This document shows, piece by piece, positions 8,693 to 55,812 of a stretch of 64,000 nucleotides of DNA. Source of the DNA: Podarcis liolepis. Its lineage: Eukaryota. A program made the position numbers and the translations under genes. Under the pieces are notes generated by a model that saw only the letters and a list, made by a program, of their open reading frames with translations, made no database searches and was not told where the DNA came from. The DNA is taken from NCBI GenBank assembly GCA_965112155.1, contig OZ218101.1; one strand, given 5' to 3'. Positions within the stretch are counted from its first letter, which is position 1. Each line of letters starts with the position of its first letter.

Positions 8693-9085
<393 letters not shown>

Positions 9086-13597: not shown

Positions 13598-13684
13598 CTA
13601 AAGTCTCTTTACAATGCAACAGCCAGCCCTGTCATAGTGATTTACATCACAGACCTTGTTTTCCAAACAATGCAGAACCACTTC
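13598..13684 (-). pseudogene. BCOR: Partial duplicate of BCOR exon 11 inside intron 10 ([28 protein letters not shown])
   Basis: 59 of the first 69 nt match exon 11 in an ungapped hand count. Preceded by tttcttttctccacccttcctgcctttctccAG. In-frame TAG at 13600-13598. Confidence 0.9.
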
Positions 13685-16600
13685 CTGGAGAAAGGCAGGA
13701 AGGGTGGAGAAAAGAAACTGTTTGTTGCTATGGAGATATTTTTAACACCAGAGGTTATCACTTAAAGAAAACAGGAGGGAGGGGCACAATTCATCTGGGA
13801 AGTGTTTCAATTGGGGAGGGGGAAGAGAAGAGGAATGTTCCAGGGGGAGTCCTTCTATAAAGCAGTCAGATAAGAAGGGCATTTGGAAACGCAACGCCTA
13901 TGAGCAAATATCCCTCGCAGCCAAAGTATCATGGCAGCCAACAGACTTTCCTAGGCTGAGGCCTGCAATGCATTCTACCAGCAAAACCCCATTCCTCTGG
14001 GGAAACCATGAAGAAAACCTCGGATTTCCTGTCTACAACCCTATCCACAATGCACACACACCCCTCACCACCGCTCACAAATTCACTGACTTTTCTAGCA
14101 TGTTCCTGTACAATAACAGGGAAAAAGTTGAGAGCACACACTTGGGTGAGAAATTTTATTTAAAAAACAACAACAAGAAAACTAGAAAGGTCATACAAAA
14201 ACCACCACAAAAAACAAGTTATTTTAACATCCCTCTAGATAATATATTCCCTGTCAATTTATATTTAAAAGATGAAGAAAACAAGTTTTTCAACAAATCT
14301 CAAAACATTGTTGTATTGTGGGTCTGAGACACTTTTCTGGCTGTCTTACGGACTATAGCATTTCAGCTGATTATGCCTGTCACATCAGAGAGGTCATTTG
14401 AAAGGTTGCCAGCTGCACACCAGTGTAGGGCCAATCTAGTCCTGACAACAGTTGTGCATGTTGTAAACACGTAAACTGTCCAAATCACAGAGAGAGAAAA
14501 GAGTGTGCATGCCTGACTTTAAAGCAATGTACAGGTGTTGAGTACAGACTTTCCCTCACCTATGGCTTATCTGCCATTAACTTCTGCCTACACATCTGCA
14601 AGGTGATGGGCGGGAGGCGGGGGAGAGAGAGTTAATTTATTACTCCAAAGAAATAAATAAAACATAGTTAGCATCAAACTAGATCTGTTGACTGAGTAGT
14701 GGCAAAGAGACCTGGGTAGATATGGCCTCTGGAAAAATTGGGCTCCAGGTCTATTTCTCTGTTGTTTTTCAATTTATACATCCGACTTTCTTCTAGGCAA
14801 CATCTTTCCACTCACTGCTGAAACCTGCAATTCTTTCCCTGCTCCTTTCACACACCTCCAGCCCTTAATGAATGGCACTGCTGCTATAATCAATTTCACA
14901 ACCCTCCCTGCCAGCTGCATCTCTCTCTAAAAAAATAAACCGCACACACCAGGATAGCACTGGACAACATTTGAGGGTTGACATGCACTACACAAAATCC
15001 CTCCAAAATAGGTGCAACAACACTTTGCACAGCTGGTGTAGCTTATTGCTCTCTCGGCTACAGCCATAGTCCTGCAACATGGGTATAACAAGGAAGGACT
15101 TTTATCTGCTTGGTATTGGGCAAACTGCTTTAAAAATTGTTTTAATTTAAGTAAGAGTTTTCCCAAGTTCAAAAGACAATGAACTCCTGGTTTTGCTGCT
15201 GCTTTTGACTTGATACACTATTCCCCAATCACAGCTACACTCGAATCCTGGATAAATGCATTGTTTTCTATAGGGCAGCAACCCCTTCTCCACCAGGGAA
15301 GACCAGAATAAAAGGTGGAAAAGTGAAAAGCAAGCAAAGGTGTTTCTTCTCTAGAGTTTCCACAATCGGGCTGCACATTTTGGGTTCTAAAGGTGCTATA
15401 AACTTTCTTTTTCCTTTTTTCCTTAATGGAAGTGGGTGATCTGGGCATTACGGTGCATCTCTTGCCCACCCCAGCCCCACAGGCACCCATATCTTCACAG
15501 CCAAGCTCTGAAACACAACCAAGCAAAAAGCTTCTGGAGAGAAGGTCCATGAAGAGGTAAGCAATAGGTACACAGTGGAGTCGGCACCCAACCTACTACA
15601 CTCACATTGCTATTAAAATCCTCCTCCTAACAGAGTGTTTCAATAGACAAAACTGAGCTGAAACAATCACATCTCCTTTGGCCCTGAGCTGACATGATTA
15701 AGGAAAAGGAGACATGTAACTGATATCTCTAAGTCAAGACACAGAGAGTACCACCTAGGAATGCCTCTCCCTTTCCCCGTCAAACTGTGCATTCAGTACA
15801 GCTGTTTCAGGAGGAGTTTTAATCTGGTATTTGCCGCTGTTTACTCTGGAAAGGGCCTTCAGCACTGTCCTTATTTGTTTTCCTTGAAGCCTCGTGGAAT
15901 ACAGTTTGAATTAATTAAGCTATGGGACACCTCGTGAAAGTCAGAGGCAATATTCCCAGTGGCATGTGGTAGCTATAAAAGCAGAACGTTTCCAAGGGCG
16001 TCTCATGTAAAATGTTGTTACATATACAAATAAGGTGGCGCTGAACTCTTGTTGTTCGTGCTCAATGTCCATCCTCAGAAGTCCAATGTGGCTGAAGAAC
16101 AGAGGTTCAGAACTATCTCCACTACTAACACCTATAGATCCTACAGAGACAAGTGGGTCCTGCAACAAAATGCTGCAGCATGGGAGTGCTCCTAGTCAGC
16201 CAACCATTCCTTTTCTATTCTGTTCCTACACACCCCATTGGCACTCAGCAGACACAACTAACATACATAAAAACAGCTCCAGATCCACCACACCCTGCTA
16301 AAATTAAGATCCCAAGGCCTAGGTGAATAAGAATGGCTCTGCCTGGTATCTAGAAACAGGCACTGGTGTGCCTCCCTGGAGAGCACACCCCATTAAGAGG
16401 GGAGAGGGGCCACCATGGAAAAGGCTCCTTCTCCTGTTGCCACCCTCCACACCTCCCACAGCAGGTCACACAGAGTAGGGTCTGGGTTGCTTCATGTGGG
16501 GAGAAGAGGCCCTTGAGGAATTGGGGTGCTGAGCCACATAGGTCAAAGCCAGCACACGCCACCCTCTGAAAACAACCATCCAAGTCAGATTGGTAGTGGT

Positions 16601-18321
16601 GCTACCTAACCCCAGCTCAGACAGTCATTCCAGAGGCATAGAATGACCAATGGTGTCAAAAGCCCTTAAGAAATAAATTAGCGGCAACAGGAACACACTC
16701 TTCTGTCTCTCTCCTAACAGGGTAATCCAAAGCAAGCCTACATCCCAACTGAAATGGAGCTAAAAGATTGGTTTCACCCAGGATACCCAAGATCTGTCCT
16801 GCAACCCCACAAGAACCTTGCCCAAGAAGGAAACATTAGTGACTGACCAATTTCTAAGGAGATTTTCTGAATCCATAGAGTGTTTCTTAAGGAGTGGTCT
16901 TAACACTATCTCCTTTAGACAGGTGGGGGGCCCACCCCCTCTTGCAAGGAGGCTTTAATCACCTCTCTGATGTGGTCAACCCTGCTGTTTTAAAAAACCA
17001 TGAGCATCAAGGGAGAAGAGCAGAAGGAGTTGCCCAAACCAAGTCAAGCACCTTGTCCATGTCCATAAGTCTTGCTAACCGAAACTCATCCAACACAACA
17101 AGACTAGAAAGTGCTCCATGATGCGTTGGAGGATGAAATTGTCTGATTGTGACTTTAATCACTGGACTTTTCCCATATACAAGATGCCACCTTGCCCTAC
17201 TACACAATAAGTTAAATGCACCATATATAACCACTACCCATATTTCAGTATGCCACATTGCTATCTAGCCCCTCAACACAGGCTTCAACATACTGAACTG
17301 ATTCTCTTCTCTTTTTCATCAAGGAAAAGGGGTACAGCAAGTTGACTGCTTCTTGATTAAGGATCAGAACAGGTAAAGTTCTGATTGACCTGTGCTTGAC
17401 TAAGCTCTAGAACCACCACTGGAAGCAAGCAACTCCCATCATCCCTGGGGTTTATGGGAGCTGGAGTCCAGTAACATATGGAGGGCCACCGGTTCCCCAG
17501 TCCACACCCCTGCTTTTGAAGATCTCACATTTTATTGCTACAGGTAGAAGTAAACAAAACCTTTCCATAAAACAAAATTAACAGAAGGATTCGTCAGGAC
17601 CCATCCCCCCCTCTCTATATATATAGCATTTTAAGGATGGCAGCATTCTTACAAGCAATGTCTAAAAATGTAGAAAGGAAAATAAACCCAAAGACATAGG
17701 CACCTATAGAGCTGCTTTGCTAATAAGTCTGATCTCCAAACTATTTGTACATATGACTATTTTCACCTGAAGTCTGTAAGTCCCGTCCCAGTGATTTACC
17801 AGCTCTAAATGCCAGTTTGTTTTTCAAATATGGGAATGCATCACAAAATATATATTCATAACATTAAAATGCGAAGTTCAAAAGCAGCCCTGAAATGAAG
17901 CGTGTCCACACTCTCACACTGCCAAAGCTGTGCCGCTAACTAACCTTCCAGAAATGGAGCATATATGTTAACTTTGGCTGTGTATCAGGGTATCTATTCC
18001 CACCCCCCACTACTTACTCACGATCCCCATCCTGCAAAGCACATCAAGAACTGACTTCTTATTGAAAATGACTGGCACCTATTCAGGCTCAAGGTTATTA
18101 ACTTACAGGGGTTTATATTGTTTCTTTCCTCGCCCTGCTCACAAAATATACTAATTGCACGCTTGAATAAAGAAACAGAACAGAGAGCCTGGAGATATTT
18201 CGACATGTTGAGAAGGAACACAAAGAGAGACTCCAACCACGTGCACAGTTAGAATTATGTGTGACACCAAGCATCTTCCACATTGTAATTCAGAGTAGTG
18301 AACTTCAGAAACAATGCTTGC

Positions 18322-18459
18322 CTCGTATCCCAGTCGGGCTGCCCTTTGCAGAAGAGTTTCTCCAGCGTTCTTATTGACAATAAGCCTTCGGGCTTCTGGC
18401 GGCATGGGACGACTTGGGGGAGTCTCCTGAGGGGCACTTGCAATCTGCAGCTGTGAGGG
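18322..18459 (-). CDS. BCOR: BCOR exon 10, intact 3' part ([46 protein letters not shown])
   Basis: 138 nt in frame. The 3' boundary is fixed by phase and homology at GAG|GCAAGC (GC donor). The 5' boundary is inferred from the internal acceptor tgcctgtctcttcAG (18461-18460) and is less certain. Confidence 0.75.
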
Positions 18460-18593
18460 CTGAAGAGACAGGCAATAATGAGGGACTCTGCTGCTGCAGG
18501 CGATTGTACAATGCCTGTTCATGTGATTTGACTGGCGAAGAGTCACAGTCTGAAGGAGTCTCTGGTCGCTTCCAGATTCTCATTAACTATGAC
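18460..18593 (-). pseudogene. BCOR: Frameshifted 5' part of ancestral BCOR exon 10 (VIV / [40 protein letters not shown])
   Basis: Homologous to human [20 protein letters not shown]...LQQLLPAS but with an extra base at ~18584 and another at ~18463. The full ancestral exon 18322-18593 is 272 nt, not a multiple of 3, between two phase-0 junctions. Confidence 0.7.
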
Positions 18594-18925
18594 CTGTCAA
18601 AATCATTACTGGATTCCACACCCCACCCACCCATCCTTAATAATTCATTGAAAATCCATTTTCCCTTCTCTCTCTTTTTAAAAGTGTAGTAGTGTTGGCT
18701 TCTAGATTTATACCATCTAAAAGTTTAAGATCAAAATCCTGAAAGAATCGGAGGAGCCCTCACAGTAAAGTGGATTGAGCGCTGCAGAACAATACAATGT
18801 GTTTTAAAGTAAACAGAAAGGGCTTGGAAGTACCACTACATAAGACAACAAGCTAAGCATTTAAAGTGGCTGATATTAGCCAAACCTGAAATATTAGTGG
18901 GACAACTGGGTTGAAATAAAGATAC

Positions 18926-19254
18926 CTTCTCCTCAGCACTTTCGAGATCAGTGACATCATCTCCTGTCAGGGATGACCTCCTTCTCCTCTCCTGCAGTGC
19001 CAAATGTTTTGTTTTACACTGACGTTTCCCTGGTGGCTTCTCACAGTCGCCATGTTTCTGCAGCAGGGATGCAGCTTGGAAATCTTCTTCCTCGTCTGTG
19101 CACAGCACATCTGTCTTCCAGTTTTCTTTAATTTTCTGCTGCTTGGCAGCCAACCTTGAAACTGGAGTACAGCTTGGCTGGGCTTGCCTTTTGCTGTTTA
19201 TATTGGTAGATGAAAGTGTCTTCATGTGCGGAGATGCTGGGAATGGAGGGATAC
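18926..19254 (-). CDS. BCOR: BCOR exon 9 ([12 protein letters not shown]...ESAEEK)
   Basis: 329 nt. Acceptor atttAG (19256-19255), donor AAG|GTATCT. Within ORF 18836..19318. Confidence 0.94.
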
Positions 19255-21964
19255 CTAAATGGGGAGGAAAGGCATTGTACATTGCATAGTGTGTTGAAAG
19301 GAAAGAGAACACACACACCTAACATTATTTTAAAACTTTTACATTCACATTAAGCAATTCCACATTTGGACTAGAAGCAATAAAAAGTAATTGTATTGGG
19401 CGGGTACATCTGCTAAACAAAGTTTGCTGTTCTGAGATCTAAGCACAGTAAACAACCACACAGTCTAGCACTGCACCATCTAAGCATCGTGGCAAAGTAG
19501 ATATGAATCAGGCCTCCTTCTCAGTGTACTTGTTTATATGGATGCAGATGAGAGAAGAGGCTTCCTTACCTGTAATGACATGCTAGCAAAGTGGGAATAT
19601 ACTGCTCTTTCAGGTATAGAACTGCTGAAACCTTTCCACCTCAGGAAACCCATTTTTGCTTTTTGTAGAGCAGAGTGGAGTGTAAAATTCAAAGGACACA
19701 GAAACGGTTTCCATAATCAGAAACGCTGGTTGAGTGCCCAATTCCCATTTCTGCCTTTGAAAAAGTCTCCCTTTGTGCACCAAAAATGAGGAAAGCATTG
19801 GGTCTGTTTCTTGCAGCATTCTGAAAAGGGATTCATAGATCCAAACAGCAATTTCTCAGTGTTGTATGGCTCTTAACCATTAAGCAGCTGTCTCTCCTGT
19901 TTGCTGCATTGCAAAGACCTAACTTTCAAGAGTTGCCTTTTGCAAGGATGTCGTGTACAGAAACAGGATATAGTGACCTTTTCAGCTTCTCTAAAATACC
20001 AACAATGCATTTCTCATAGCTTCAATGTTCATTCCACTTTTGTAACATTCTACTGACCATGCCTGAAGAGAGAAAAGGATTCCCCGAGACATGAAGGAAA
20101 TGTAAAGAAAGCAAAGAGGTTCATGATGAGTTTGTTTACATGACAATTTTCAGGTAAGAGGAATCAGAACTAAACTTCTACAGAACCCAAAAGGGACCAA
20201 CAGAACAACTGGAATGAATAAAAATGAATGACACGCTGTGGTTTTAGAGTTAGAACAGTATCTGAATTCACAGTGCATCAAATCAAGGTTTCTTAAATTC
20301 TGTTTCTGTAAGATTAAGCAATGTATGAATGGAATAGAAACCAAGGGCTTGACTCATGAGTCTGATCTAATGAAGGATTCTCTTGTCTTAAAAAAACTTT
20401 TAAAAAACGTATAAGAAAGTGGTGAATCCTCCAGCTGTTGTAGACTTAGGCCTAGTTTTCACCAGGGTGAAACTTGTGGCTTTACTTTTCAAGTAGGAAG
20501 TAGGGGCTTGCACTTCAATGTTCCTCTGTTCCAAAAATAAATAAATCTCCCCATACCTGGAAAACTAGCATGTTGCAAAGAAGGCTCGTTTTCCATATGA
20601 TTGCTTTCCGGGCGCAGGGAGTCTTTTTGTATGGGAGAACATTCAACGATTCAGATCTCTGCTCTCAATAACAGAATTTTCTCCCATATAAAAACAAAAA
20701 ACCAAAACTCTGCCTATCACGGTCTGAAATGGTAGAGGCCAAACTATGTGTTACATTAAATGCATGATTTGATTTAATATGTTTCAGGTTTTGTTTTTAT
20801 TTTAAGACACAGCAGCTGCGATCTGGAGTACAGCACATGGGAAGGGCATTGACCCTTTCCCCCTGCACCACGGTCCTGATTAAAATCCCTCCCTTCTCCA
20901 GCTGCTATTTGCTCTTACAGGGAACCTGCTGTTGGTACCTATAGCAGCTCTGAGGAGCGATATTAGTCAGAACAACAGTGCAAGGAGAAAGGGTTAAACA
21001 AGAATTTAACATAACATATAATTTGACCCTCAGAAGCTCTTTCCCAAAGACCTGCTCCCAGTTGGAGATGAAATCTTATATTTCAATGTTATAGTAGGTT
21101 TCTACAGATTTTTATTGTGTATGACAGCTACGTTGCTTGTCATTATATTTAAATTGTCATTTTATTTCCTGTGAACTGGTTTTTAATACAATCTATGTGT
21201 AGAAGATGCAGCACATACAAAACTGACGACGACTAATTAGGAAAGAGAAGAAAGAAGTGGTAAAGCAGGCTAGGTAGAAGAACTCAGCTAGTCTGCATTT
21301 AACCACAAAGCGGAAAAGATTTGGGAAAAGACACCTGTGCACCTTTCCTGTCATAAAGAGAATGGAACACAAGGAGACCTCTTTCTTCCCTCCAGCTTTC
21401 CAGAGCAGGAAAAAATTAACTCAGAAGTTCAAACCTAATGGAGCAGTGAATTCCCACAAGTGGTTAAAAGACGCAGTACTCTTCATACTATCTTCCTTAA
21501 TCTACACTCATTCATATGTGTCAAAAATTGTTATGAAATCAAAATCATTCCTGACTGGTAAAGATGAAGGGGGGACTGTTATGAAGTCAAAAACTGTTAA
21601 GAATATCAAAAAGCAAAAATGACCAAAAAGAACCTACAGACAAAAATATTTTAGGTTTTTGGTATTCTCTCTCTCCCCCCCCCCCCCAATTTGAAGCGGG
21701 GAGGGAATCACACGACACAGACAGCACACACATCTAGGATGTGGCATTAAAACACAATTAGCACCACACACTACAGATTTGGCAAAACAAGCATAAGTGG
21801 TTTAATAGTGGCACTTTAAGTCCTTTATATGATCATAGTAAAATTTTATATTATATATAATATAATATAAAACTTCTACCCAAAAAACTACTGACAGCTT
21901 CTTAGCACTGGTGGCAGCATGCGTCACTAAGTAATGCTAGATTTCCCTAGTAATCTCTGCATAC

Positions 21965-36328: not shown

Positions 36329-36410
36329 TAATGGCATCGCCATGTTTTGCTCTAAATGACTACAGGAGGCACACAGAAATTTCAAAAAGGCATATAAAAA
36401 CTTTGCTTAC

Positions 36411-36594
36411 ATCTGTCATTGTCATTTTGCCCAGCAATGGCATCTTCCAAAGTGACAGACTTAGGTTTCTTTTCATTATTTCCTTTCAAGTTTTCCCAGT
36501 CTGCTTGGTTGAATCTGCAGACCTCCGGGTCTTTGGTTGCTACGTGGCCTTCTCTCTCTTTCATCTCCAACTCTGAGAAGCGCATCATTGCACG
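36411..36594 (-). CDS. BCOR: BCOR exon 6 ([15 protein letters not shown]...NDNDR)
   Basis: 184 nt. Acceptor ttttctAG (36596-36595), donor GTAAGC. Overlaps ORF 36382..36588. Confidence 0.95.
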
Positions 36595-36982
36595 CTAGAA
36601 AGAGAATTGATATGGGGAAGAAAGACACCTCACAATAAGAGCTACTTCATTTACCTTACCTTCTATGAAAAGTATTTCCAAAAGAAAATATCTGCTCAAA
36701 CCCAAAGTTTTGAGATACACACAATTCTATATAAAGTTTTAAAATGCCATGTGTTCAATATGCAAGGCATGTAGTATCTATGCACAAATGATATACAGTT
36801 CTTCCATATATAAAAGTAAATAACATTATATATATATATATTTATTTATTTATATATGTGTATTAAAAAGCATTGTCTTTTGAGAGGTATAACAAAGAAA
36901 CAAAACATAAACTGTACAATGAATAAAGACGACCATGGCCCACAACTTCCCTTTGTGTACTTGGAAATGAAATTTTAACTCA

Positions 36983-37130
36983 NNNNNNNNNNNNNNNNNN
37001 NNNNNNNNNNNNNNNNNNNNNNNNNNNNNNNNNNNNNNNNNNNNNNNNNNNNNNNNNNNNNNNNNNNNNNNNNNNNNNNNNNNNNNNNNNNNNNNNNNNN
37101 NNNNNNNNNNNNNNNNNNNNNNNNNNNNNN
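36983..37130. other. Assembly gap (148 N) at the expected position of BCOR exon 5
   Basis: Run of N between exons 4 and 6. Confidence 0.99.
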
Positions 37131-37716
37131 TCATCCATTTTTATAAGCATCAACTAATTCTTTCTTTTTTTAACAACGCAAAACAATTTGGCTTAACTCA
37201 TTCTTTCACAAATCTAAAAAATAACCTACAATACTTGCCATCATTCAACGTCAAATTCACTACAGCTTCTATTCCTTTAAGCTACATTTCTGCTTGGTAA
37301 AGAAGTTGCATTAAACCGGCTAACATATGGCTGCTACTCCTTTTTAATCAAATGTCCTGTATGAAATAATCATCAGAACTTCTGCCTTTCCTTTGGTATT
37401 TAATAGTGCTAGCCAAACACAGGCAAGCTATAGCAAACTACCTTTAAAAACAAACATGTCATGCATTCTTCAGCTTCCTTTCACTACTACATGTTATGCT
37501 TATGAGATTTAATTATTTGTTACACCAATTAACTACATATAATTCTTATCTATTAACGCTCCAATACCCCTGGCTTCATAGCAGAACCCGATATACACAA
37601 GATTACCACTGCTAGTTAAGTTCAAGATAGACTTATAGAGTTGTACATATTTCATTCTCAACTGTGAACTGTGTTTTTTTTAAAAACTGCTTTGGTAGTT
37701 AAGCCTCAGAACTCAC

Positions 37717-40515
37717 CTGCAGAGCCCGCTGTTCTCGACTAAGTTGGCTAGAATCTGCATACAGTTCTGTCGTAACACACTTGAATCGATCACCTACGTA
37801 ACCAGCAGAGTTTGCGATTCTCTTTGCCAGGTTAGATGGCTTAGGTTTCAGGAATTTGCCATCATTAGGTTCCGCGCCCTCAGTTCCCTCTTTGGCGTAT
37901 GCCTGACTGACTTCCATACTTGACTGCGTGTTTCCCATACAAAGCTGTTTAGCATCATCTGGCATTTTGCAAAAGGACATAGCTAGGCCATCGTTTCCGT
38001 GAGCAGCCTCCAAGAACACAGAGGAAGTGGGAACCGTTAACCTCTCCCTATTCTGGCTCAAGGAAAGGTCCTCTTTCCTTAAGTTGAACATTGATGGGTG
38101 TGGGCTCTGGGCTTGCTTGAAGTTATAAACTTCATGGAAATTGCTTCTCCCACAGTCTTCTCTCATCACAATGAAGTCTCTGTGGGGGAAGCCTTGTTCT
38201 ACCTTGTGCTTTGTGGGGTCGCTTGCTTGATTACTGCTTTCAACAGGAAAGCTAGGTTTCGTCAGGTTCGTTTCACCTTTCACATCTTGCTCCTCTCTTG
38301 GTTCTGCAAACAGGTGCTTGTCACTTTTGGTAGTATTTTTACCATGACTTGAACTTTGGTGCAATTTCACGTTTCTGTCTGCAGGTACTTCAAAATGTAG
38401 TTTTGTGCTGGTTTCCAGCATCTCGGGCAATCGGTTTCTCAAGGCAGGGTCTTCATAACGGAGCCGTTCATGCGATCTAGACCTCCTTTCCGATTTCTCA
38501 TCTTTCAGCTCCAAAGCTGTATGGGGTAACAGCATTGGGTGTACCATACCCATGCCCAAAGCATCCTGGTAGGTCATGAACTCACCTCGGCTGGCTGGCA
38601 GGCTGTATGGAATGGTAGGTTTGGGAGCTAAATGTCCAGGGAAAAGACTCCCATTGGGTAACAGAACAGGGTGAGGATATACAGGTCCTTTCCCATGTAG
38701 AGACAAAGGGCCTATAGCTAAGCCTTCTGGAACTGGATATGGGAGATAGCTTCTCGGATAGGGCAATGGTGGAGATCGGAACGCATCATTGGGAGGGAAA
38801 AATATGGAAGTTGGTGCAAGGGTGTTCTCATTTGCTTTGAAGATAGGTTCTGGATTATTGCATTTAGCTGCCTTATTACTATGCTTTGAAGATGCTGCTG
38901 CTACAGGTTGTCCTATGTGCTGTATGACAGATGCAGTGGTCTCTACGGAGCTAGTCGTCTTAGGGCAATCGACATTGGCATTTGGAGCAGGAGAAGCAGA
39001 TGCTGGGCGACCCCCGCTTGACACAGACCCTGAAATATTACTGACAACTGCTTCTGTACCCCCCATCCTAGGGCAAGAAGAACTCCGCTGTTGTGGCGTC
39101 ACCCAGTCCAATGCTTTGTTTTTCAACTGCATGTTTTTACCACCGTTATCTTCATTGGGACCTGGAACAACCCAGGAGGAAGGCGCCGTGCTGATTATTT
39201 CAGGTCTATAGACAGGGCAACCGCTTCCAGGAGAAATGGTTTCTTTTGGAAGATCACCTCCAGGTAAAACCAAGCCACTTCCGGCCCTGCTATGAACCAG
39301 CACAGTTGGCGCCATTTTCTTAACATGATCAGATTTGGTTGTCTCCATGTCAACAACTTTTGATGACAAATCCAATGGTTTGTCTATAATCTCTTTGGTA
39401 ACAGTCTGTTGTTTTTCTAACAGTGGAGGGGATCTGCTGTCCTTCCTGTCGTGACCTGTTTTCCTTGCATGCACTGTAGGCTGCTGAGTGATTTCGCCTG
39501 GGTCATGTGTTTTAGGAGCTTTCCCCCCGGAGACTCTTGGAGGAAACTCATTGCTTACATTCACGTATGGCTTTGGGAGTGTAACTGAAGAAGGAGACGT
39601 CGAAATCCTGGAAAGGTGTTTCTGAAACTCCGAGTAAGCGTCCCCAACCTGCGTCGGAAGGTGAACTCTAGGTGATGGTCTCGGTGAATGAGACAAGAGA
39701 ACAGTGGGGTCTGTGGGCATATTACTAGCCGCTGGCTTTGCAGATGGGACTCTGGGAGGCTTGCTGTTCTGGATATGTGGATAGGCATGAGAGTCTACAG
39801 GAGTTCCGGGTCCAACTCCCATCTTCCAAGACAAGCTCTTTTCTGGACAGTGTCCTAGAGGGGGAATAGCTGGAGCTGCGGTTGCAGCAGAGATCCTCAT
39901 TGGTGAAGCTAACGATGACGGAATGTGGGGAGCAACGTAATGAGAAGGTGGCAAGTATAAAAAACGTTCACCATTTGTACATACGGGCGAGTAGGTCAGA
40001 TGCTGTGGCAAGCTGTAATTGGACTGCTGAGGTAGCAAGGCCTTATACATGTTCAACGAATACTTATTTGGTGATTCGAGAAAAGGATAAATAGCACCCT
40101 CCATGTAAGGATTTACCCAGGGTAGCCTTAGGTAACTAGCACCATTGACATTGAGAGGACTCGGTTTGTCACTTGAGCTTCTGTCCAAGCCTAAGGTCTC
40201 CCCAGTTGGAAGCGAACTTTTTTGTATTCCAGGTGGCGTTTTGTACATAGCACTGAAGCCATTTGGGGGTTTTCCAGCTGCATTTTCAATTGCTTCAGTG
40301 GGATTAGACTTGAACTGCATCTCTGGATTTCTTTCAGGAGCAAATCCAAGGCCAGCAATAGCACTTGTAGCATCCCGGGGCTTGTCTGAGCCAAGTCCAC
40401 ATAAACTGGAATAGACAATACTGCTGGGGACTCTAAGCCCTTCCCGCATAAGTCCAGACCGGTCCATGCTCAGAGCTGCAAGGCTGTCAATGCGATGCAC
40501 TGCCGTGGCATCCAC
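37717..40515 (-). CDS. BCOR: BCOR exon 4 (giant exon, 933 codons), including the BCL6-binding domain [17 protein letters not shown] (39157-39207)
   Basis: 2799 nt uninterrupted (ORF 37699..40548). Acceptor cacaaAG (40517-40516), donor CAG|GTGAGT. Confidence 0.98.
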
Positions 40516-41035
40516 CTTTGTGAAATAAGAGAGAGGTGACTTTGGCATTTAGTCAAGTACTATTCGAGGCTACAGGTACTTTAAAAAAAAAACATTGCAG
40601 GAAACAAAAGGAAGCAAATACATTGTTTTCATTGTGAAAAACTAATGTGGGCTGATTAAACCGATAAATGCAGAGGAATAAAGTAAATCAAATTTTAAAT
40701 TTTTAGCCTGCTTCATTCTTCTGTCTGTGGAGTCTGAGACCTGCCAAGTTTGATTATTATTTTTTCAGTAAGATTAGTTTAATAGGTCTCTAGATCCTTT
40801 CATACTTAGCAAAACATCTACTCAACCAACTGTCCCATTAAAAAAAAACTGATTTCCAGAACCATGTGTGTACTCGCTTCCAACTAGGGACATTTCATAA
40901 GGTATGCTTATGGGGGGGGGTCCCTCAGATGCAAAGTTATTTATACTCCAAAAATCATTTAAATCAAATAATGACGCTGAGTCTTTTTTTACTTCTGTTC
41001 CTCTGCTTATTGATAGCCAAAATAAGTGATATTTA

Positions 41036-44732: not shown

Positions 44733-47700
44733 TCACTGGGAGTGTTGTGCATCTGCGTAACTTCTACAGGATGTAAGAGTACTCGACTTTGGCGGCATAA
44801 TTCTGTCTGTGTGTTTAACCCTTCGTAAACAGCAATATATCATTTACATTGATACAGACACCAGTGGATGTTCTTTTCCACGTGTAGCTCAACCAGTGTG
44901 TGTGATCCAGCGGCAATTGCGACACCCCCATCCCTCTGAAATCAATGGTACCTAGGGTCACTAAATGTACTTCCTAAGCCTGATTGTCCCCATTATGTTG
45001 AAGTAAGTTTCAATGAAACTTTAAATCCAAATAATGGGGGAGATCCAACCAAAATTAAGCAGGACAAATTCCCACAGGTTTTCATTTATTCACAAAGCAG
45101 GGCTCAACATTGGCGGGATCTTACCCAGTGCACAAAAGAACTGGGTTGTGTTTGAAGAGATAACTTTAGCAAGGAGGAAATCCAAATATGAAAACACAGC
45201 CTGGGAGTGGGAACAGGGCCAGACTGAAGGCAGAGTGATATCCTAACATTCACTTTTTTAAAAAAGCAAAAAAGCAAGGTGTCAAATGTCAGTTTCCACT
45301 TCAAATGAAGTTTCTATCTCTGAAAACAAGCTGAAGTAGAATGCCAGAGACAAACAAGAGCTCCTATTTTGAACAGGGCAACCATTTTCCTAGAAGTTCG
45401 TCTCCCAGCCCAGAAAAGGGTTAAGGGGAGAGAGAAAAAACATTAAGTAGGTTGGTGAGATCCCCAGCCCTTGATTTGATTAAGTAACCCAACCCTGGTG
45501 GCTTCCACCATTGGAGCTGCTGCTGCTGTTGTTGCGCCGCCGCTGCTTTGAGTGCTTTCAGTAATTCAATGACGCCTGCTCACTCCAGGGAAAGAAATCA
45601 TTAGCGGGCTCACTGGAGAAGCATTAGCAGTCCGAAAGGATCGGCGCTGCGTGCAACAGGGAAGGCAGGTGAAAGGCAACCGGATTTTCGCGTCCAGCAA
45701 CAGAAGGGCCTCGCCTGCCTTTCTTCCCTCCCGAACGCGCCATCTCCGCCCGCATTAAATTCTAGTTTGCTGCATGAGTGAAGTGTCAGGACAAGCTGCG
45801 TTTTATTAACACGATTATCGCGGCGCGTGATTTATTCCAGTGCCGGATTTTAATTGCTCTTTGGAGGTTCAGTCGTTTCTTTTGACTGAGCTTCAGCCTG
45901 CATCCCGCTGTTAAATGCTGGGTTAATAAGTAGGGGGAGCCTTTAATGCACAGGATACCCCTTCAGCTCTTCCTCTCACCAAAAAGGAGGGAGGGGAGGG
46001 GAAAGTGCGCGCAGGCACAAAATGCCTCGCCAAGGGGAGGAACGGCGAACGCGGGACGCGCTGCGCTAAATTGCTTTTCTGCAGAGAAGCGAGGCTTCCC
46101 TGGCTTTTTCGGTTTTTTAAACGGAGACGTACTAGGGTGCAATCCTTAACGTAGCTACCACCGAGGAAGTCGCCCTGCACAAATCGGGACCCATTTCTAA
46201 GCTAAACGCGTTTAGGATCGCGCGGAACGGATGGAGACGTTAACCTGTGTATTCCTAATAAGGGGCCATCCTACACACGGTTAATAACTTGGGGATACAG
46301 CACCACTGAAACTAATTCACTATCCAATATAAGTACGTATGCGATTAGGATCGGGCTCTACTGCTGCAGCCCTTCAACCCCTGTGGCTCAACCAAGCCCA
46401 GTGGGATTACCCGAGAGTAAACGGTGGAGGAGCCCCGGGGTCTGGTCGGACCTATCCACGCAGAGGCCAGCGGAGAGCGCCACGCACGCACGCACGCCTC
46501 GCAGTTTAAAAGCCCCCGTGCTCCAAAACAGACGAATTAACCCTTAAAACCGGAGCGGAGGCAAAACCTGGGTTGCGTTTGCGCACAAATGCTCCACCCA
46601 CGATCAGAGGACCTCCGTATAAGCGCCAAGGAAAGCCCTGTGTTCTCTCAAGCATTTCATGAGCCCTTCTTGTTCCCCCTCCCAGCTCCTTGAAGAAGCC
46701 TTTTGTGCAGATCCCCACGCACGGAACATATTTTACTGAAATGGCACCGTCCCCTCCCTCCCTCCGCAGCAGCTAGCTTGCAAGAGCTGACCCCAATTGC
46801 TGTCAAGGAAGAGGAACTGGCCCCTTCTCCTCTCCTTCCTTCTCCTCGCATCCCCCCCACCGCCCCAGTAAAGGCTAGGACGAAATATCGCCCTATCATT
46901 CAAAAGTTGTTGTTCCAGGGGAAAGACGGGTTTTGCTGACCAGATTTAGTGTTTTCCAGATGCACGGCTCGTAATGTTTTCGAATGGAGCAGCCGCAGCC
47001 TGGAGAGTGATTGAGAGTTTTACATACGGTTAGTAGCCGCCCAGAGCGCTGCCTCATCTGTAAGGAATGGAGGGGACACAAAGTCCAAAGAGATAGGGCT
47101 GTCTGCACGGAGGGAGGGGACGCCGCTCCCTCTCCCCTTTCCCCCACCCCTTTTCTGAAAAGCAGGAGACATGCCCGGGAGCCTAATCTTGCTTTTTATA
47201 GGCTGGAACTGAGCTAAGGCTCTGGGTTTCCTCGCGGGGAAATGTATCGTTGGTTGCCATCGGCTGTTGCTCCTGAGATCTGCAAAAGTCGACCCCAAGA
47301 GCGCGATCTGAGTCGACCCCAGGTACTTGGGGCGCTGTGTGGGGAAGGGGAGCCGATGGCTTCCAAAGGCAGATATGCAAACGAAGCTACGCCCTGAATG
47401 CAAAGGTTTCCTAAACTGGGAAGAGAGGAAGGTCAAAGGCAAATTGCCAAATAATCGGCCCAGATTATGATAACTCCCCAAGCGCTACATTGCATATTTA
47501 AAAATAAAACAACAAAACAAGGAGAAAAAGAAAACTATGTTGCCTTCTGCTGCAAGACAACCATCTCTCTTTGCTAGTCCACGCCGCGAAACTCGCCCCG
47601 GGCAAAGGTGTTTGCACAGAAGGGGCCCAGAGCGAGGCTGGGATTGCTTAAGGTCTGCCGCGGAGCTTTTGCAACAGAAGAAGTTGCCAAATTCCCCTTT

Positions 47701-50700
47701 GGAGCGTCGCCGCTGCATCCCAGCGACACGAGGCGAAAGGGAGACGGGATCCGCGGGCTGGGAGAGAAAGGCCTTTTCGGAGGCCCGAAGAAGAGTTGCA
47801 GCAGCCGGGAGCGCGCAGCGCCTGAGCCGGTTCTGTGCAAAAAGTACAACCGAGCGCGCGCGATCCCTTCCCGGGAGGTGGGCGAGGCGAGATGTTTGCT
47901 CGTTTCTGCTCGTTTTCAGGGTCGCGCTTCCCAGCGCATACATACGTTGTTTATAATCACCGCCGCCCTGATGAACTTTTTGTGAACTGTTTAAAAGTGG
48001 AGGTCTGTTGAACAAACAGCGGCGCCACTGCCAGCCATAATTTCATTGCAACAAGCAACAGACTTTTAACCCTTCGGGCTCCAGGAGGAGACGTTGCTGG
48101 CAAAGCAGCAGCCCTCTCTGCTTTGTGGCTGTGAGCCTGGAAGGTTACATATAAGCAACCACTCCGCTTACGGAGCAATGGATCCACAGCTCAGTTAAAC
48201 CCGAGCATTTGGATCTACGGTCCAGAGCAGGCTTCACCCGCAAGTCCCAGTGAAATCAAAGAAATGTGCTCAAGGCTGCAGTCCTACCCACTACTCGTTT
48301 ACCCGGGAGTAATCCCCAGTAACGCATTGGGACTAGAGTAGACATGCACTGGTTTACCCTGTAACTACCCAAACCTTCCTTTACCCTCTTACCTTAAGGT
48401 AAATCCCAAGAGGTCCACTAAAACAAGGATGGAGGACGGGAAGCCCACTCTCCTTAGGCCGCACCCCACTGGCCCTGCCCCCACAAACCCTTCGGAGCGC
48501 TTTTGTCTGGTTTTAATGTGTCCTTGACAGAAGATAATGCCTCTTCGCTTGCCTTGACGCACTTTATAGAGAAATAGAACACAGAAACCTTTTGACTCTT
48601 GCGCGGTTAGAATGTAGGCTACCGTAACATCCATGGAGCCACCGCCGCCACCTTTTGCCTCTGGCCTCGCCCACCGCCGGCCCCGAAAGGCTCCTTCAGG
48701 TGGGACCCTCAGGCTGAAAAGGAGTGCCTCCCCCCCGCATCGAAATCAAGACAGACCCAAGTCCCGCTTGTCTTTAGCGAGGCCTAGTCCCCAGAAAGTG
48801 CGCGCAGAATCGGGGCTGTTCAGGACTGGGTGTTAGCTCTAGGTATTAATCGCCTGCCTTGACCATGCTAATAAAAGGCGACATATATAATGCATAGTGT
48901 AAATAAAAATGCACAAGCGTCTGAGAAAGTCACGCTGAGAGACATTGTCAAAGAAGTGGGGTTTGGGCATAACGAGGGCGGGTAGGCCGTGGCTGTTAAA
49001 GTTTGTTCGTGTTTATTGCGATTATTTCCCACCCCACCCCCAAAAAAATCAGTACATTGAATTAGTGTGTATGCTTTAGCTGAGATTCCGGCTACACTAG
49101 AGAGTTGGAGTTGGACTAAAGACCGCAGTTTTATCTAATTCGTCCTGAAAATTAAATAAACCACCTCCCTGGCTGTTTCTCCGCCTCCGTGGAGCGATTC
49201 AGGGCTTGGCACTTTGCTTTTCCGAGTCCCCGCAAGTCTCCTTCTACCTTCGGGAATCTCCCCGTTATGTAACACTCTTTTGCTTTATTCATAGAAGGGG
49301 GGGGGACGTAAGGAAGGAGACAACAGAAAATAACAGAACTTCACATATCTCACGATTCCCCCCCCCGCAAAAAAAACTTGATTAAAAAGCTCTCTCCTCG
49401 GTGCCTCCCCCTCCCGCATGCTACTTTGGAGAGCACCCCCCCCCTCCACCTCGTTTATATGCTGCTAGCTGGGCGCCAGCACCTCGGCCAGAGTTGCTAG
49501 AAGCTGCCATAGCTGCAGCTTCCGACCGTACCAGCCCGCGACGGAAAGCAAAACCTCCTCCCCGGGGTGGGGATCGCGCCGCGCCTCCTGCCGAGCGAGG
49601 CGAGCTCGCTGGCTGCGCGAGAATGTGACCTAAGGCAGCAGCAGCAGCAGCAGGCAGGCTCCGAGCGCCAAAGAGGCCACGCGGAATTTCCTCCCCGGAG
49701 GTGTCCGGCTGACAAATCCGTCAAGCTCGCCTGGGAGGAAAAGGGGGGAGCTGCACGGCGGGGGTTTCGCTGCAAAACCTGCTCGGTGTCCGCAGCCGAG
49801 AGGAGCCTCCTCTCTCTTCCTCCCCCCCCCCCAAGCTGCTGCGCTCATGTTACAGAGCAGACTCGAAAGGAAAAGAAAAAAGCGGCCCCGGCGCTCGGCG
49901 TGTCTGGCTGAACACCCAGTTCTCCGGGCACCACTGGCAGCCGCCGCAACTCCACATCATTGGGTGGGAGGCAAATGCATTCACGCAGCGCCCTCCTTGG
50001 CTGTTGGATCCTCCTCTGCCCTCCCCGTTCTCGTTCTCTCTCTCTTTTCAAAAAGGGAACCGCTTGCATCGCCCTCGCAACGGCAACAGACTCTTGGCAG
50101 CCACTGGAGGCGGGCGCAGGAGCAAACTTTTGCTCGCACGCTCCTGCCTTCGCAAACTCAACAAACCTGGTGCCCGCGGCCAGGGGAAGCAGCCGCAGCG
50201 CTTTGCGCTTCGCCTCCCCGGGAAGGAGGGTCCGGAGAAACCATGCCGAGAGCGTTGATGGCCTCTCTTTCCCGCCCTCTTTCCCGCCATTCAAGGTGGC
50301 GAAGTAGCCTTTCTTGCCAACCAGGGCACGAAAAAGGGTGCAAGGAGGAAAAATAACCAAGAGAGTAAGCCCCAGCCGGACTCCAGCGAGCCAGGAAGGA
50401 GAGCGAATGCCGCGAGCGCACACGAGTTCCCTGTTGGCGCCTTTCCTCTTTCCACCTCCTGCTCCTTTTGGCAGCCGGCCACTTTCCACTGCATAAACCA
50501 CAGGCCCGCCGTCAGCTGCACGGCAGGCGGGTCGGAGCCGTAGAGCAAGCGGACGTGGATGGCGAATGTCAGGGGGGAATGGCGCTAACCCAGCGGGGCT
50601 TTCGCGTTAATCAGAGAAGGCCCTCCTCTGTAATCAAAACAAGACCATACATAGTTTGCCCATCTCTAGCTCCCTGCCCGTTTCAGGTCTCCCCTAAACA

Positions 50701-52387
50701 AGCTGCAGAGCATCTGATGGGGAGGCAGCCTTTTCTCCTATATTTCAATAACGACACGACGTACACTTAGCCTATTCATGAGCCTGCACATGTACTCAAA
50801 GCCTGAACTCGGGGGCAACTACACGCTTTCTGGCTCTACATTACTGGAAATGTATTTATTGCATTTATATATCTCTTCCAAGGAGGTCAAGGTGGCAAAC
50901 GTTCCCCAATTTTAGCCGCACATCAATCGCGCGAGGTAAGATCAAAGGAAAGGGCAGAGCGTGTCAAGGTCACTCAGGGAGCATCTTGGTCTGCACCAAG
51001 CACTACACTGTCCTGGCTTCCCTTTAAGTCAAACCACCTTTTCTTCCATTTACAATTTCGAATCGGCCAAGCCCTTCCTATCTTATGTCTGAACCAAGCC
51101 CCGCTGTGTTAAACGGGCCTCGCCCTACGGTATTACAACTGTAACCTTAAGATATTAGTGCAGTTTACTATTTTAAACAAGGCTGCACACTTGTGTGCAC
51201 ACTTGCCTCGGAGTAAGCCCCCTTGAACACAGAAGAATTTATGAATAAGCATGCACGGGGTCGTGCAAAATACGGTGGCATAAATTTGAACACGCCGTTG
51301 CGCAGAGGTGGCGGGAAGCTACGTTGTACGAGAGAGCTTGAAGCACGATTGTTAAGCAAAGTAGGAAAGAGCAAACTAAGTATCCACGGCTGGGAGGAAG
51401 GCGGCTGACCTTTAGCCGGGACGTGTGGCATTTTGTCTGGCCACAAAGCTAAGCACAATGTGCCTGCGACGTCTCCAACCCGATTTTCTCATGTGCGTAA
51501 CGGAGGCGCGCAGAACGATGCCCAAGTTTGCCGAAGCAGCGCGCGGAAAAAGAGAAGAACCAGTCGGGTGGCTATTTCAGGGGCTTTTAAACTTCCTCTT
51601 TCTTATGTCTGCGCACGTTCCTCGGGAGGCTTCCTGCGCCGTCACGTGCGCCTTCGCGATCCGGACTTTCTTCTCATGTAAACAAAGCGCTGTGTAGGCA
51701 TTACGGGGCGGCCGCGATCGATTGGGCACAGGCAACGGCATCCGGAATGGGGGATTCAGGACTCGAGACTCGGATAAAACCAAAACGGGACGGGAAGGAG
51801 AGAGAGAGAACGATCTTTCCCCATCTCCTGTTTTCCCTTGGCTTTTGTAAGGAACAGGAGCTCCAAGCCTCGGGGAAAGGAGCCGTGTGCATTGCAAAAG
51901 TGAGGGGTGAGATGTCGAGAGCAGGAGGAAGAGGGGAAGCGAGGACTCCACAAGCCCAGCCAACTGCTGTGTAGCCGCAGGAAAGGAAAGGACTTTCCTG
52001 CCGTTTGCCAGGGAGACCCTGCTTCGAAGGGAGAGAGTGGCTTCAGACAGCCTTTGCCTTCGTTTTCCTGGAAGATCGGGGTTCAAAGGGGGCGGTGCAC
52101 GGACCGGCAGCGCATCCAAAAACCTCTGGCAGCAGCCGGTCGTTTCCTCCACCGCCGTGCGCAAGGCTTCGGACCGCAGCAGCCTCCTTTGCACATCAAC
52201 CGCGAAGCAAAGCGCAGTGACTTCGACTCTTTACCGCCATTTGCCAGGAAAACTTGTGAATAAGTGATGTTTGGGGACGGGGAGGGGCGGGGAGAGGAGG
52301 ACGGCGGAAGGCCGTCAATAAGGGAAAGGTAAAATGGCTGGCGAGCCTTCAAATAACCCTGCCCGCCGTCTCTGTCTCCCTCTCTCA

Positions 52388-52418
<31 letters not shown>

Positions 52419-53444
52419 GTCGTCTCTTGCCAACGTTTTCTGCGCGGTGGAGAAATAGCGCCCCCGCTTCTCCTAGTACGAGACCCGGGGGAAGCTGTGG
52501 GGCCCGTTTGTTCCACCCAAATGAACTCGGAGGTGGGGGAGGTGGAGCGGCCACGGGGGGGGGGATATTGGGGTGTCGTCGTGCGCCTTAATAATCTGGT
52601 CCCTCGTGAAATAGCCCAGGCACACGGGACGTTGCAGGAAGCAGAAACGAAGGCAACAAAACAGAATGAAGGCGAGAGAAGTATTTCTCTCGCGACCTCG
52701 CGTCTCTCCCCCGCCGTTTGATCCGAGAAAGTCCCCGAATTGACTTGTGCCATTAAGGCCCAGTTCCGGCACTACGTACACGGCGAAAAGCACCTTCGCC
52801 TCGGGCGCCGATGTGGGGGTCTCACCCCGTCCCGTGGGGTCCCCTCCTCCCCCCTTCGGAGAGGATTATAGGCTCGGCAGCACCGAGGCGAAGGGCGCTC
52901 GCCTGGCCTGTACGGAGCGCAGGCACCTCCTCGCGCTGCCGCCTCCTGCAACTCTCCTTCGCTCTTTCAGCCAGACCGAATGAGTCATCCCAGCCCGTTT
53001 CGTCTTTGAGATCCCCGACCGGCCGCGCCATTTTAGGCGCGCGCACAGACACGGGCTCGGTTTCCGCTGCTGCTGCTGCTGCTGCTTGGAGAGACAACAA
53101 GCAGGCGGTGACAGAGGCGGAGGAGGGGCGGCGGCGGCGGCAGCAGCAACGGGCCACAGGAAAGGAGAAGGGCCTCCGTGGAGCCTACCCGCTTGGCACT
53201 CAATGGGTCTTTCAGGTACCGAAGCGGACGCCGCCTCCCTGGGTACCAGCCAAGCGAGAGCGGGGGAAAACGCAGGCAAGGCCCCGTCGGCGCCTGCGGC
53301 CCATTAACCCCTCGCACGCCCCCAGCCCGGACAGCAGGCAAGCTGGCTGGCTTGCAAAGACAGAAGGAAGAGGTTCCTCCCAGCCCAGTTTTGGTCTCAC
53401 AAGGGTGTGCTAAGAATCCAGGTTAGGGAGGGAGTAAGCTGAAA

Positions 53445-53796
53445 GGGATGCGGGTGGTGCTGTGGGTTAAACCACAGAGCCTAGGGCTTGTCAATCAGAA
53501 GGTTGGCGGTTCGAATCCCCGTGAGGGGGTGAGCTCCTGTTGCTCGGTCCCTGCTCCTGCCAACCTAGCAGTTAGAAAGCACGTCAAAGTGCAAGTAGAT
53601 AAATAGGTACTGCTCCGGCGGGAAGGTAAACACTGTTTCCGTGCGCTGCTCTGGTTCACCAGAAGCGGCTTAGTCATGCTGGCCACATGACCCGAAAGCT
53701 GTACGCCAGCTCCCTTGGCCAGTAAAGCGAGATGAGCGCCACAACCCCAGAGTCGGTCACGACTGGACCTAATGGTCAGGGGTCCCCTTTACCTTT
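53445..53796 (+). mobile_element. Sauria SINE (Squam1-type) inserted in the CpG island
   Basis: Same head, body and tail as the other two copies; short imperfect TSD ta(a/c)gctgaa. Confidence 0.9.
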
Positions 53797-55661
53797 ACGC
53801 TGAAGGAAATTATTTTTTTAAAAAAACGAAATCGTATTTGTTAATAGGAAAGTTTAAGAAGGAAAACCAACACAAGTATCCAGCTATGTGCGTGACTAGT
53901 ACACATAAACAAACCAGCCCAGACCCAAGGTCGGTTGCTGTGAAGACCAGGATGAAATGGTAAACCCGCTTGGTCCACACCCTCTTGCTTTTTAAGCCCC
54001 ACGGTCTACAGCAGCGCGCGTGCACGGGGGAGGCGCACACCCACAGCCGAGTTTCTCTCCCCCCCCCCTTCGTGATGAATGCGCTCCCCGCCCTCTCTCT
54101 TTCCCCTTGCCTGCCCCGCTTGGGCCGGCGCTGCCCTTTGTGGCTTTTTCGGCCCGGCGGCCGCGCTGCGAGAGCCCAAAGGAGGTCGGCGTCGGCCCCC
54201 GTATTCACCGGGGAAACGAGCAGATATTGATCACGGGCGAGTTGATTTTGCTTAATTGTGGCTGACAGTGCCTGTGGTTTCCTCATTTACGGAGCAACAG
54301 CATCGAGGGTCTGATTGATTGGGAGCGCAGCGCCTCCCACTCCCCGCTCTCCCTCCCGGCAGACACACACACAGGGGGGGGGGGCGGAGCGAGCAGCCAC
54401 CTCCGAGAGGAGCCTGTGTGAAGGCGAGTCCCTCGGGAGGGGAAGGAGCAGCTTCTCATTATTCAGCAAATGGCCGGCGCGCCGGCAGCTAGAGATGCAG
54501 CTTGGTTGGTTCGCTGTCGAGCGCTCGGGCGAGCTTAAGTAGCCTTAAATCCTCCCGCTCCCCCCGCAGGACCGTCTGCCTGCTTTTGCCTGCGTCGTCG
54601 GCCCCTTCGCCTCCACCACCGCCGCCGCCGCCGCCTCCTCCTCCTCCTCTTCGCCCGCCAGCAGATTGGTCCGCGAGTTAAGCGCTCGCGAATGGAGAGC
54701 TTTTAACAGGGCGGGGGGTTGCAATCCTCGTCGCCTAAGCGCTCGCTCAGTCGAAGTCCCCACGCCGAGGTGGCGAGCTCGTCCCCCGCAAACTTAACTC
54801 AGGAGCAACCTCGCTCTCCTTTCAATGAAATGACGCCATAGCAAAGCAGCTTAAGGCGCAATCCAGCGCTCACAAGCCCCGGTTGAAATTAATTGCTAAA
54901 GAACAGCAGCCGTTCCCTGCGCAGCTTTGTCAGCCGGGCTTGCGCAGGAGACCTTCCCGTTGGCTTGCGCCCTTAGCCATCTTCCTGCGGAGAAGCAGCG
55001 AAAATCCAAACCACCAGCACCATCACACTTCGTCTGTACAACTCCTACCAGTAAGGAGTTTTGGTGCCAGCGCTTTCTGGAAAATGTGCATTAAACGTGC
55101 CTTTTAAAATAAAGATGAGCGCAGCAGACTTAAATGTCAGAAAAGGAGCTGTGTGGCAACCATCTGCAAGCCGCTTGATCGAGGATGGCTTCACAATTGC
55201 CCTGCGACCCTTTTTATATCTACTCAGAAGTAAACCTCGTTGAGCTGAATGGGGCTTACTCACAGGTGAGCGCGCATAGGATTGCCGCCTTAAATGTGAA
55301 ATCTGGGTCGAGTCCCTAAACCTGCCTATCAGTTGCAGGAGGGTTTCTTCCACGAATCATGTTCTCCAGTCCAGATTTCCCTACATTAGCATTTCTAGCT
55401 AACTGTCCCATCCCCAGTGCTTTCCGCTCCTTTAACTTTTTTTAGCCCCCCGCCCCAAGTGCATTCCTGCACCCCCGGGGTGGGTTTCATCGTAAAGCAA
55501 ATGAGCACAGGATTGCCAGCGGTCACCTAGGCTCACCTAGAGGAAGACACAGAATACACAGCGACACCTGCTTCCAGGTAAACATACATAGGCTGGAGCC
55601 GAAAGACAATTTATGCGAAGACGACCAGGGCTTGGGCATCACTCATAGGAACAAAGGCTTA

Positions 55662-55812
55662 TCATGAACCAGACCATGGGCCTATCTTGCTCATATTGTC
55701 TGCACTGACCGGCAGCAGCTCTCCAGGGTTTCAGGAAGGCCTACCTGGAGACGCCAGGGATTGAAGCAGGGACTTTCTGAATGCAAGGCAGATGCTCTAC
55801 CACTCAGCCAGG
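55662..55812 (-). mobile_element. tRNA-derived squamate SINE (Squam3-like, family name tentative)
   Basis: Minus strand TGGCTGAGTGGTAGAGCATCTGCCTTGCA...TTCAATCCCTGGC...CCCTGGAGAGCTGCTGCC...CAGACAATA. Related degraded copies at ~62215-62348 (+) and ~11485-11550 (-). Confidence 0.6.

Follow-up and report, generated by a model that had tools for sequence, protein, structure and literature searches.

Exon 9 of BCOR, on the minus strand of the window (the whole 64,000-nt stretch of DNA analysed here, from a lacertid, Podarcis or a close relative), is spliced to an acceptor inside the ancestral exon 10, and the upstream half of that exon lies within intron 9 with its reading frame broken. The two single-base insertions that break the frame are genuine, and the internal acceptor is used exclusively at the available RNA depth. 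It is very probable that an ancestral choice between two acceptors was fixed in squamates on the internal site, with 44 residues lost from the protein and the upstream half decaying as intron. According to this explanation, the ancestral exon 10 would have been 270 nt long, encoding 44 linker residues and the 46 residues leading into ankyrin repeat 1, and would have held an internal in-frame acceptor (...TCT CAG/CCC TCA CAG..., slashes marking splice junctions throughout), an alternative site that is still seen in turtle gene models. In squamates this site would have become the sole acceptor, joining exon 9 (donor at 18926) to 18459; the protein would be made without the 44 residues, the upstream 134 nt would now belong to intron 9, and this relic would have decayed through two +1 bases, indels of whole codons, a 3-nt indel that sets it apart from two related genomes, and a stop codon in the former frame.

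In partial exon intronization, a single donor can be joined to either of two acceptors, of which the downstream, in-frame one turns constitutive, and the exonic sequence between them becomes intron and decays. BCOR resembles this class, i.e., the fixation of one alternative 3' splice site, with no apparent mechanistic difference from the general case, and would be a further instance of it, in a Polycomb (PRC1.1) gene that is dosage-sensitive. The event is real but fairly ordinary; the acceptor shift adds nothing to existing knowledge of BCOR function, and the short junction is already carried by squamate gene models. Its value lies in offering a clean and datable example of an alternative splice site turned constitutive in a whole reptile order, with the discarded half still readable. 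It also shows that, in a conserved gene with developmental and tumour-suppressor roles, an exon that looks broken can be a genuine state supported by reads, which calls for caution in annotation and in pseudogene calls.

BCOR in the window and the acceptors of exon 10

The window carries the BCOR orthologue, with high identity in the large and C-terminal exons and the same exon order. The exon 4 open reading frame (949 aa; 37699–40548, minus strand) shares 99% identity with the BCOR proteins of Podarcis muralis and P. raffonei, and 97–98% with those of Lacerta agilis and Zootoca vivipara. P0287, the closest full-length model and one from Podarcis, aligns exon by exon and in order in a tblastn search (87–100% identity), with no frame breaks in the other BCOR exons of the window, in agreement with the original prediction that every other exon is intact. 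This model contains the PF15808 (BCOR) domain, ankyrin repeats, and the PUFD domain according to Pfam. The window exons were searched against databases one at a time; their Pfam scan scored a single ankyrin repeat, below the Pfam cutoff, and the exons for PUFD lie outside the window, while isolated pieces (the two halves of exon 10, and exon 4) gave no Pfam match. The exon following exon 4 (36409–36633, minus strand) shows only 87% identity to Podarcis BCOR across 75 columns; the seven residues 992–998 of P0287 are unaligned between these two exons, and the intervening intron holds a run of N (36983–37130). Upstream of the first coding exons, the block of 46000–56000 is rich in GC (54–59%, vs ~42% elsewhere) and probably represents the BCOR promoter region with its CpG island.

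Exon 9 (18926–19254, minus strand; 97% identity to Podarcis BCOR by tblastn) begins after an acceptor AG at 19256–19255 and ends in phase 0 at a donor (AAG/gtatct) with the last exon base at 18926. Facing this single donor are two acceptor AGs, at 18595–18594 and 18461–18460 (both minus strand), of which the downstream one is in frame. The upstream AG (ttgacAG) occupies the ancestral position; the residues VIV that follow it match the VTV opening the long form of turtles, crocodilians, and birds. Its pyrimidine tract is poor, as had been claimed, with pyrimidines at 10 of the 20 preceding positions. The exon-like stretch from this AG down to 18322 measures 272 nt, and the frame from 18593 runs into TGA at 18545–18543 after 16 codons. 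BCOR homology of the stretch is split over three frames (VIV, a 40-residue piece, and the 46-residue PSQLQIAS...RLGYE), all of which reproduces the original description of this region. In comparison with the turtle long form, the frame is broken by one extra base near 18584 (GTT-A-ATG) and by an extra T near 18463 (TCT-T-CAG). A third AG, at 18588–18587, would start the exon at 18586 with LMRIWK... in phase with exon 9. The reading of the first frameshift as a mere 7-nt acceptor offset was nevertheless rejected, in that the VTVT... of turtles places the ancestral acceptor at 18595–18594, and neither AG is used in RNA. Despite the option at 18586, comparison with the turtle long form indicates a genuine +1 relative to the ancestral layout.

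The downstream acceptor (18460–18479, minus strand) has the features originally ascribed to it: a branch-like A at 18479 (cCTCAt), position –20 from the AG at 18461–18460, followed by the pyrimidine tract ttattgcctgtctcttc. Pyrimidines occupy 16 of the 20 upstream positions, and no AG occurs from 18486 to 18461. The exon that starts here (18322–18459, minus strand) is 138 nt long, in frame, and stop-free, and 44 of its 46 codons specify residues identical to those of turtle. Two in-frame CAGs lie 9 and 15 nt further downstream, also as noted before, giving potential exon starts at 18450 and 18444. As spliced, intron 9 is a GT..AG intron of 466 nt (18460–18925, minus strand) that includes the abandoned 5' half of the ancestral exon 10 (134 nt, 44 codons; 18460–18593, minus strand).

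The region 18150–19350 was compared with four sequencing runs: X4, a set of DNA contigs that comes from a different sample and study and is labelled as the same species as the genome best matching the window; X13, a set of DNA contigs of organism G, a sister species; X15, a set of contigs of organism G that are probably RNA; and X23, raw stranded RNA-seq reads of organism G. The contigs of X4 and X13 are derived from short reads. The RNA thus comes from the sister species, whose DNA (X13) has the same structure, and not from the window's own species. In this RNA the downstream acceptor is used and the upstream one is not. The joint from 18926 to 18459 is present in one 1011-nt X15 contig (depth 60.5) and in all nine X23 junction reads, which have nine different starts, bearing out the prediction that about 44 residues are lost by an acceptor shift. 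Exon 9 and the 138-nt exon, both covered by X15 and X23, stand at similar depth, and the RNA depth is zero in every bin of 18478–18641. All first mates in X23 map to the plus strand, in keeping with a dUTP library and a gene on the minus strand. No joints to 18593, 18586, 18450, or 18444 appear above the reporting threshold in X15 or X23; with nine junction reads, however, use of another acceptor below ~10–20% would escape notice. Likewise, at this low depth, no transcript using the upstream acceptor is found among the nine junction reads or the RNA contigs, a result compatible with disuse of this acceptor as well as with rapid decay of its transcripts.

Short and long forms of BCOR among vertebrates

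Three protein searches and a representative search retrieved about 300 BCOR clusters, which were assigned to two forms by how many residues separate GKRQCKTKH, a motif of exon 9, from PMPPEARRL. The spacing splits the clusters cleanly into short (49–54 residues) and long (~88–104 residues). Between 57 and 66 short-form clusters were retrieved from squamates and turtles, representing ~25 squamate species. With the lungfish representative as query, the top 120 matches were confined to birds, turtles, and crocodilians; squamates were reached with the window exon 4, and then with the Podarcis model, as queries. All squamate clusters retrieved are short, covering geckos, skinks, a cordylid, lacertids, a varanid, agamids, iguanids, and snakes: Podarcis (three species), Lacerta, Zootoca, Hemicordylus, Tiliqua, Varanus, five geckos, Pogona, Phrynocephalus, Anolis (two species), Sceloporus, and about ten snakes. 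The 44 residues are absent from every squamate gene model retrieved.

Squamate models (Podarcis muralis, P. raffonei, P. lilfordi, Lacerta agilis, Zootoca vivipara, Anolis, snakes, and geckos) share with the window the exon 9–10 junction AEEK/PSQLQ and the same downstream exons. These models, RefSeq or Ensembl entries, are protein only, and the window additionally displays the recognisable, frame-broken relic of the skipped half. In general the squamate junction reads ...EEK/PSQLQ...; the models of pleurodont iguanians (Anolis and Sceloporus) differ from the window in having EEK/LQT. The latter corresponds to an acceptor CAG located 9 nt (three codons) further downstream, equivalent to the exon start 18450 here (P0227, P0234, P0235, P0302, and P0304–P0306). 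The agamids Pogona and Phrynocephalus have the PSQLQ junction.

Turtle models comprise both the long form and a form exactly 44 aa shorter with the squamate junction EDK/PSQLQ, exemplified by the Chelonia mydas BCOR isoforms X9 (1648 aa, long) and X11 (1604 aa, short). The alternative turtle isoforms are like the window in their internal acceptor and in the product shorter by 44 aa; in contrast, turtles retain an intact long form and the event is alternative there, whereas squamates are modelled with the short form only and the window cannot encode the long one. Both forms are accordingly found in an outgroup, in turtle annotation rather than in reads, which indicates that the acceptor predates the loss. 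Because turtles use the same junction, the internal acceptor was not created by the extra T and is an older alternative site common at least to turtles. Among the clusters retrieved, the long form alone occurs in birds, crocodilians (alligator), a marsupial, and a lungfish; short forms of birds or crocodilians, if in the database, should have outranked the long forms in the search with the Podarcis model.

As judged from annotated protein models rather than DNA, exclusive use of the internal acceptor appears to be squamate-wide, i.e., the normal squamate gene structure already reflected in annotations, and not peculiar to this genome or to lacertids, contrary to its first framing. The switch would then date to the squamate stem. 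A recent intronization specific to lacertids, in which the long form was lost in this lineage alone through new frameshifts and a newly created acceptor, could be favoured on the grounds that the frame breaks are documented here just in Podarcis-level genomes and that the high similarity of the relic to turtle fits a young decay. It is nevertheless a very unlikely explanation, as the models retrieved from geckos, skinks, a cordylid, a varanid, agamids, iguanids, and snakes invariably have the short junction and never the long one, and the acceptor, being used in turtles too, was not made by the extra T.

State of the upstream half

X4 and X13 each cover 18150–19350 in one piece, with 5 and 13 substitutions, respectively, relative to the window. 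Indels in the same region are a 3-nt insertion at 18578 in both, and two more insertions within intron 9 in X13, which are also seen in X15. The 3-nt site (18578–18579, minus strand) lies in the relic; X4 and X13 carry CTC behind 18578 on the plus strand, i.e., GAG on the gene strand, and hence read MRRIWK where the window reads MRIWK. The original prediction set MRIWK of the window against RRFRK of human as a radical change; the relatives have an additional residue here. The 3-nt difference could be a polymorphism or else a minor slip of the assembly, and lies inside the unused relic. Compared with turtle, the relic also has whole-codon indels, namely an extra CAG-type codon (LQQQSPS vs LQQTSS) and, in the window alone, one codon fewer close to the old acceptor.

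When the window, X4, and X13 are compared, the relic shows three substitutions and one indel in 134 nt (3.0%), comparable with the remainder of intron 9 (10 in 332, 3.0%), whereas the used exon parts show 3 in 468 (0.6%; Fisher p = 0.047, with very few sites); the 138-nt exon 10 itself has no differences among the three. The relic would thus be evolving neutrally, as its frame breaks, stop, indel, and intron-like rate suggest, yet the variable sites are very few and the relic still matches the Chelonia long form at 29 of 38 residues, vs 85 of 109 for the coding exon 9 and 44 of 46 for the used half of exon 10. By rough rates, 29/38 is rather high, somewhat more than expected after ~200 My of neutrality. 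It follows that the frame breaks may be younger than the splicing switch, or that the relic keeps some constraint, part of it perhaps because it supplies the branch point and pyrimidine tract for the acceptor in use.

The unexpected preservation invites the thought that the old acceptor is still of use. Any residual use of it would be expected to end in removal by nonsense-mediated decay (NMD): a transcript starting at 18593 meets TGA after 16 codons and one starting at 18586 meets a stop after 71 codons, both well upstream of later junctions, and the 50–55-nt rule predicts NMD for either. BCOR is in this respect like poison exons and other NMD-coupled unproductive splicing, where the old acceptor would bring a premature stop upstream of many exon junctions; unlike poison exons, however, no old-acceptor transcript is seen, nor any sign of regulation or of conservation beyond shared ancestry. 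We regard it as very unlikely that squamates kept the relic and the old acceptor as a low-level unproductive choice leading into NMD, buffering the dosage of a PRC1.1 core subunit, although this, if true, would account for a relic that still resembles turtle about as closely as a coding exon does. Very unlikely, too, is a regulated unproductive extension, with low-level or tissue-specific use of the old acceptor tuning BCOR dosage and the relic conserved on that account; the predicted NMD and the 29/38 match to turtle would suit it, but the relic has zero junction reads and zero RNA depth, follows an acceptor with a poor pyrimidine tract, varies like an intron among Podarcis genomes, and carries an indel. 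Fixation of the internal site, with the upstream half decaying as intron, remains the preferred reading.

No deletion near 18463 or 18584 is found in the X4 or X13 contigs, and both extra bases are present in each. The occurrence of both bases in independent sets of DNA contigs establishes the +1 bases as genuine and rejects the assembly-error alternative that had been left open. The view that the two frame breaks are consensus indel errors hiding an intact 270-nt exon and a long form, to which the typical single-base indels of long-read consensus, the close match between the relic and the long form of turtle, and the possible assembly slip at 18578 might lend colour, can hardly be maintained against short-read-derived contigs that show no indel relative to the window at ~18463 and ~18584, RNA that fails to cover the segment, and the lack of any squamate gene model with the 44 residues.

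Residues lost from the protein and the splicing of intron 10

The match to PF15808 (219 positions) stops at position 197 in the short forms of Podarcis and turtle, whereas the long form of turtle is matched up to position 219. The conserved C-terminal tail of the domain (the last 22 of 219 positions), just before the ankyrin repeats, therefore falls within the 44 residues. In the literature, we found no published BCOR isoforms at exon 10, and no report that the 44 residues act as a nuclear localisation signal or in any other way. Squamate BCOR thereby offers a natural deletion experiment for an uncharacterised 44-residue segment kept by birds, crocodilians, and mammals.

Downstream of exon 10, intron 10 (18321 down to 9023) is a GC-AG intron, with a GC donor at 18320–18321 (GAG/gcaagc, minus strand) spliced to exon 11, which starts at 9022 (ttccag/GAAGTG at the acceptor). 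In both X15 and X23, loose ends at 18321 continue on the gene strand into the start of exon 11, and the GC donor is therefore really used. An old king cobra model (P0282) reads through the start of intron 10, which suggests that snakes have this GC donor as well. Also within intron 10, ~4.6 kb upstream of the true exon 11 (8855–9022), there is an exon-11-like fragment (13616–13687, minus strand) that is identical to Podarcis BCOR at 19 of 24 residues.
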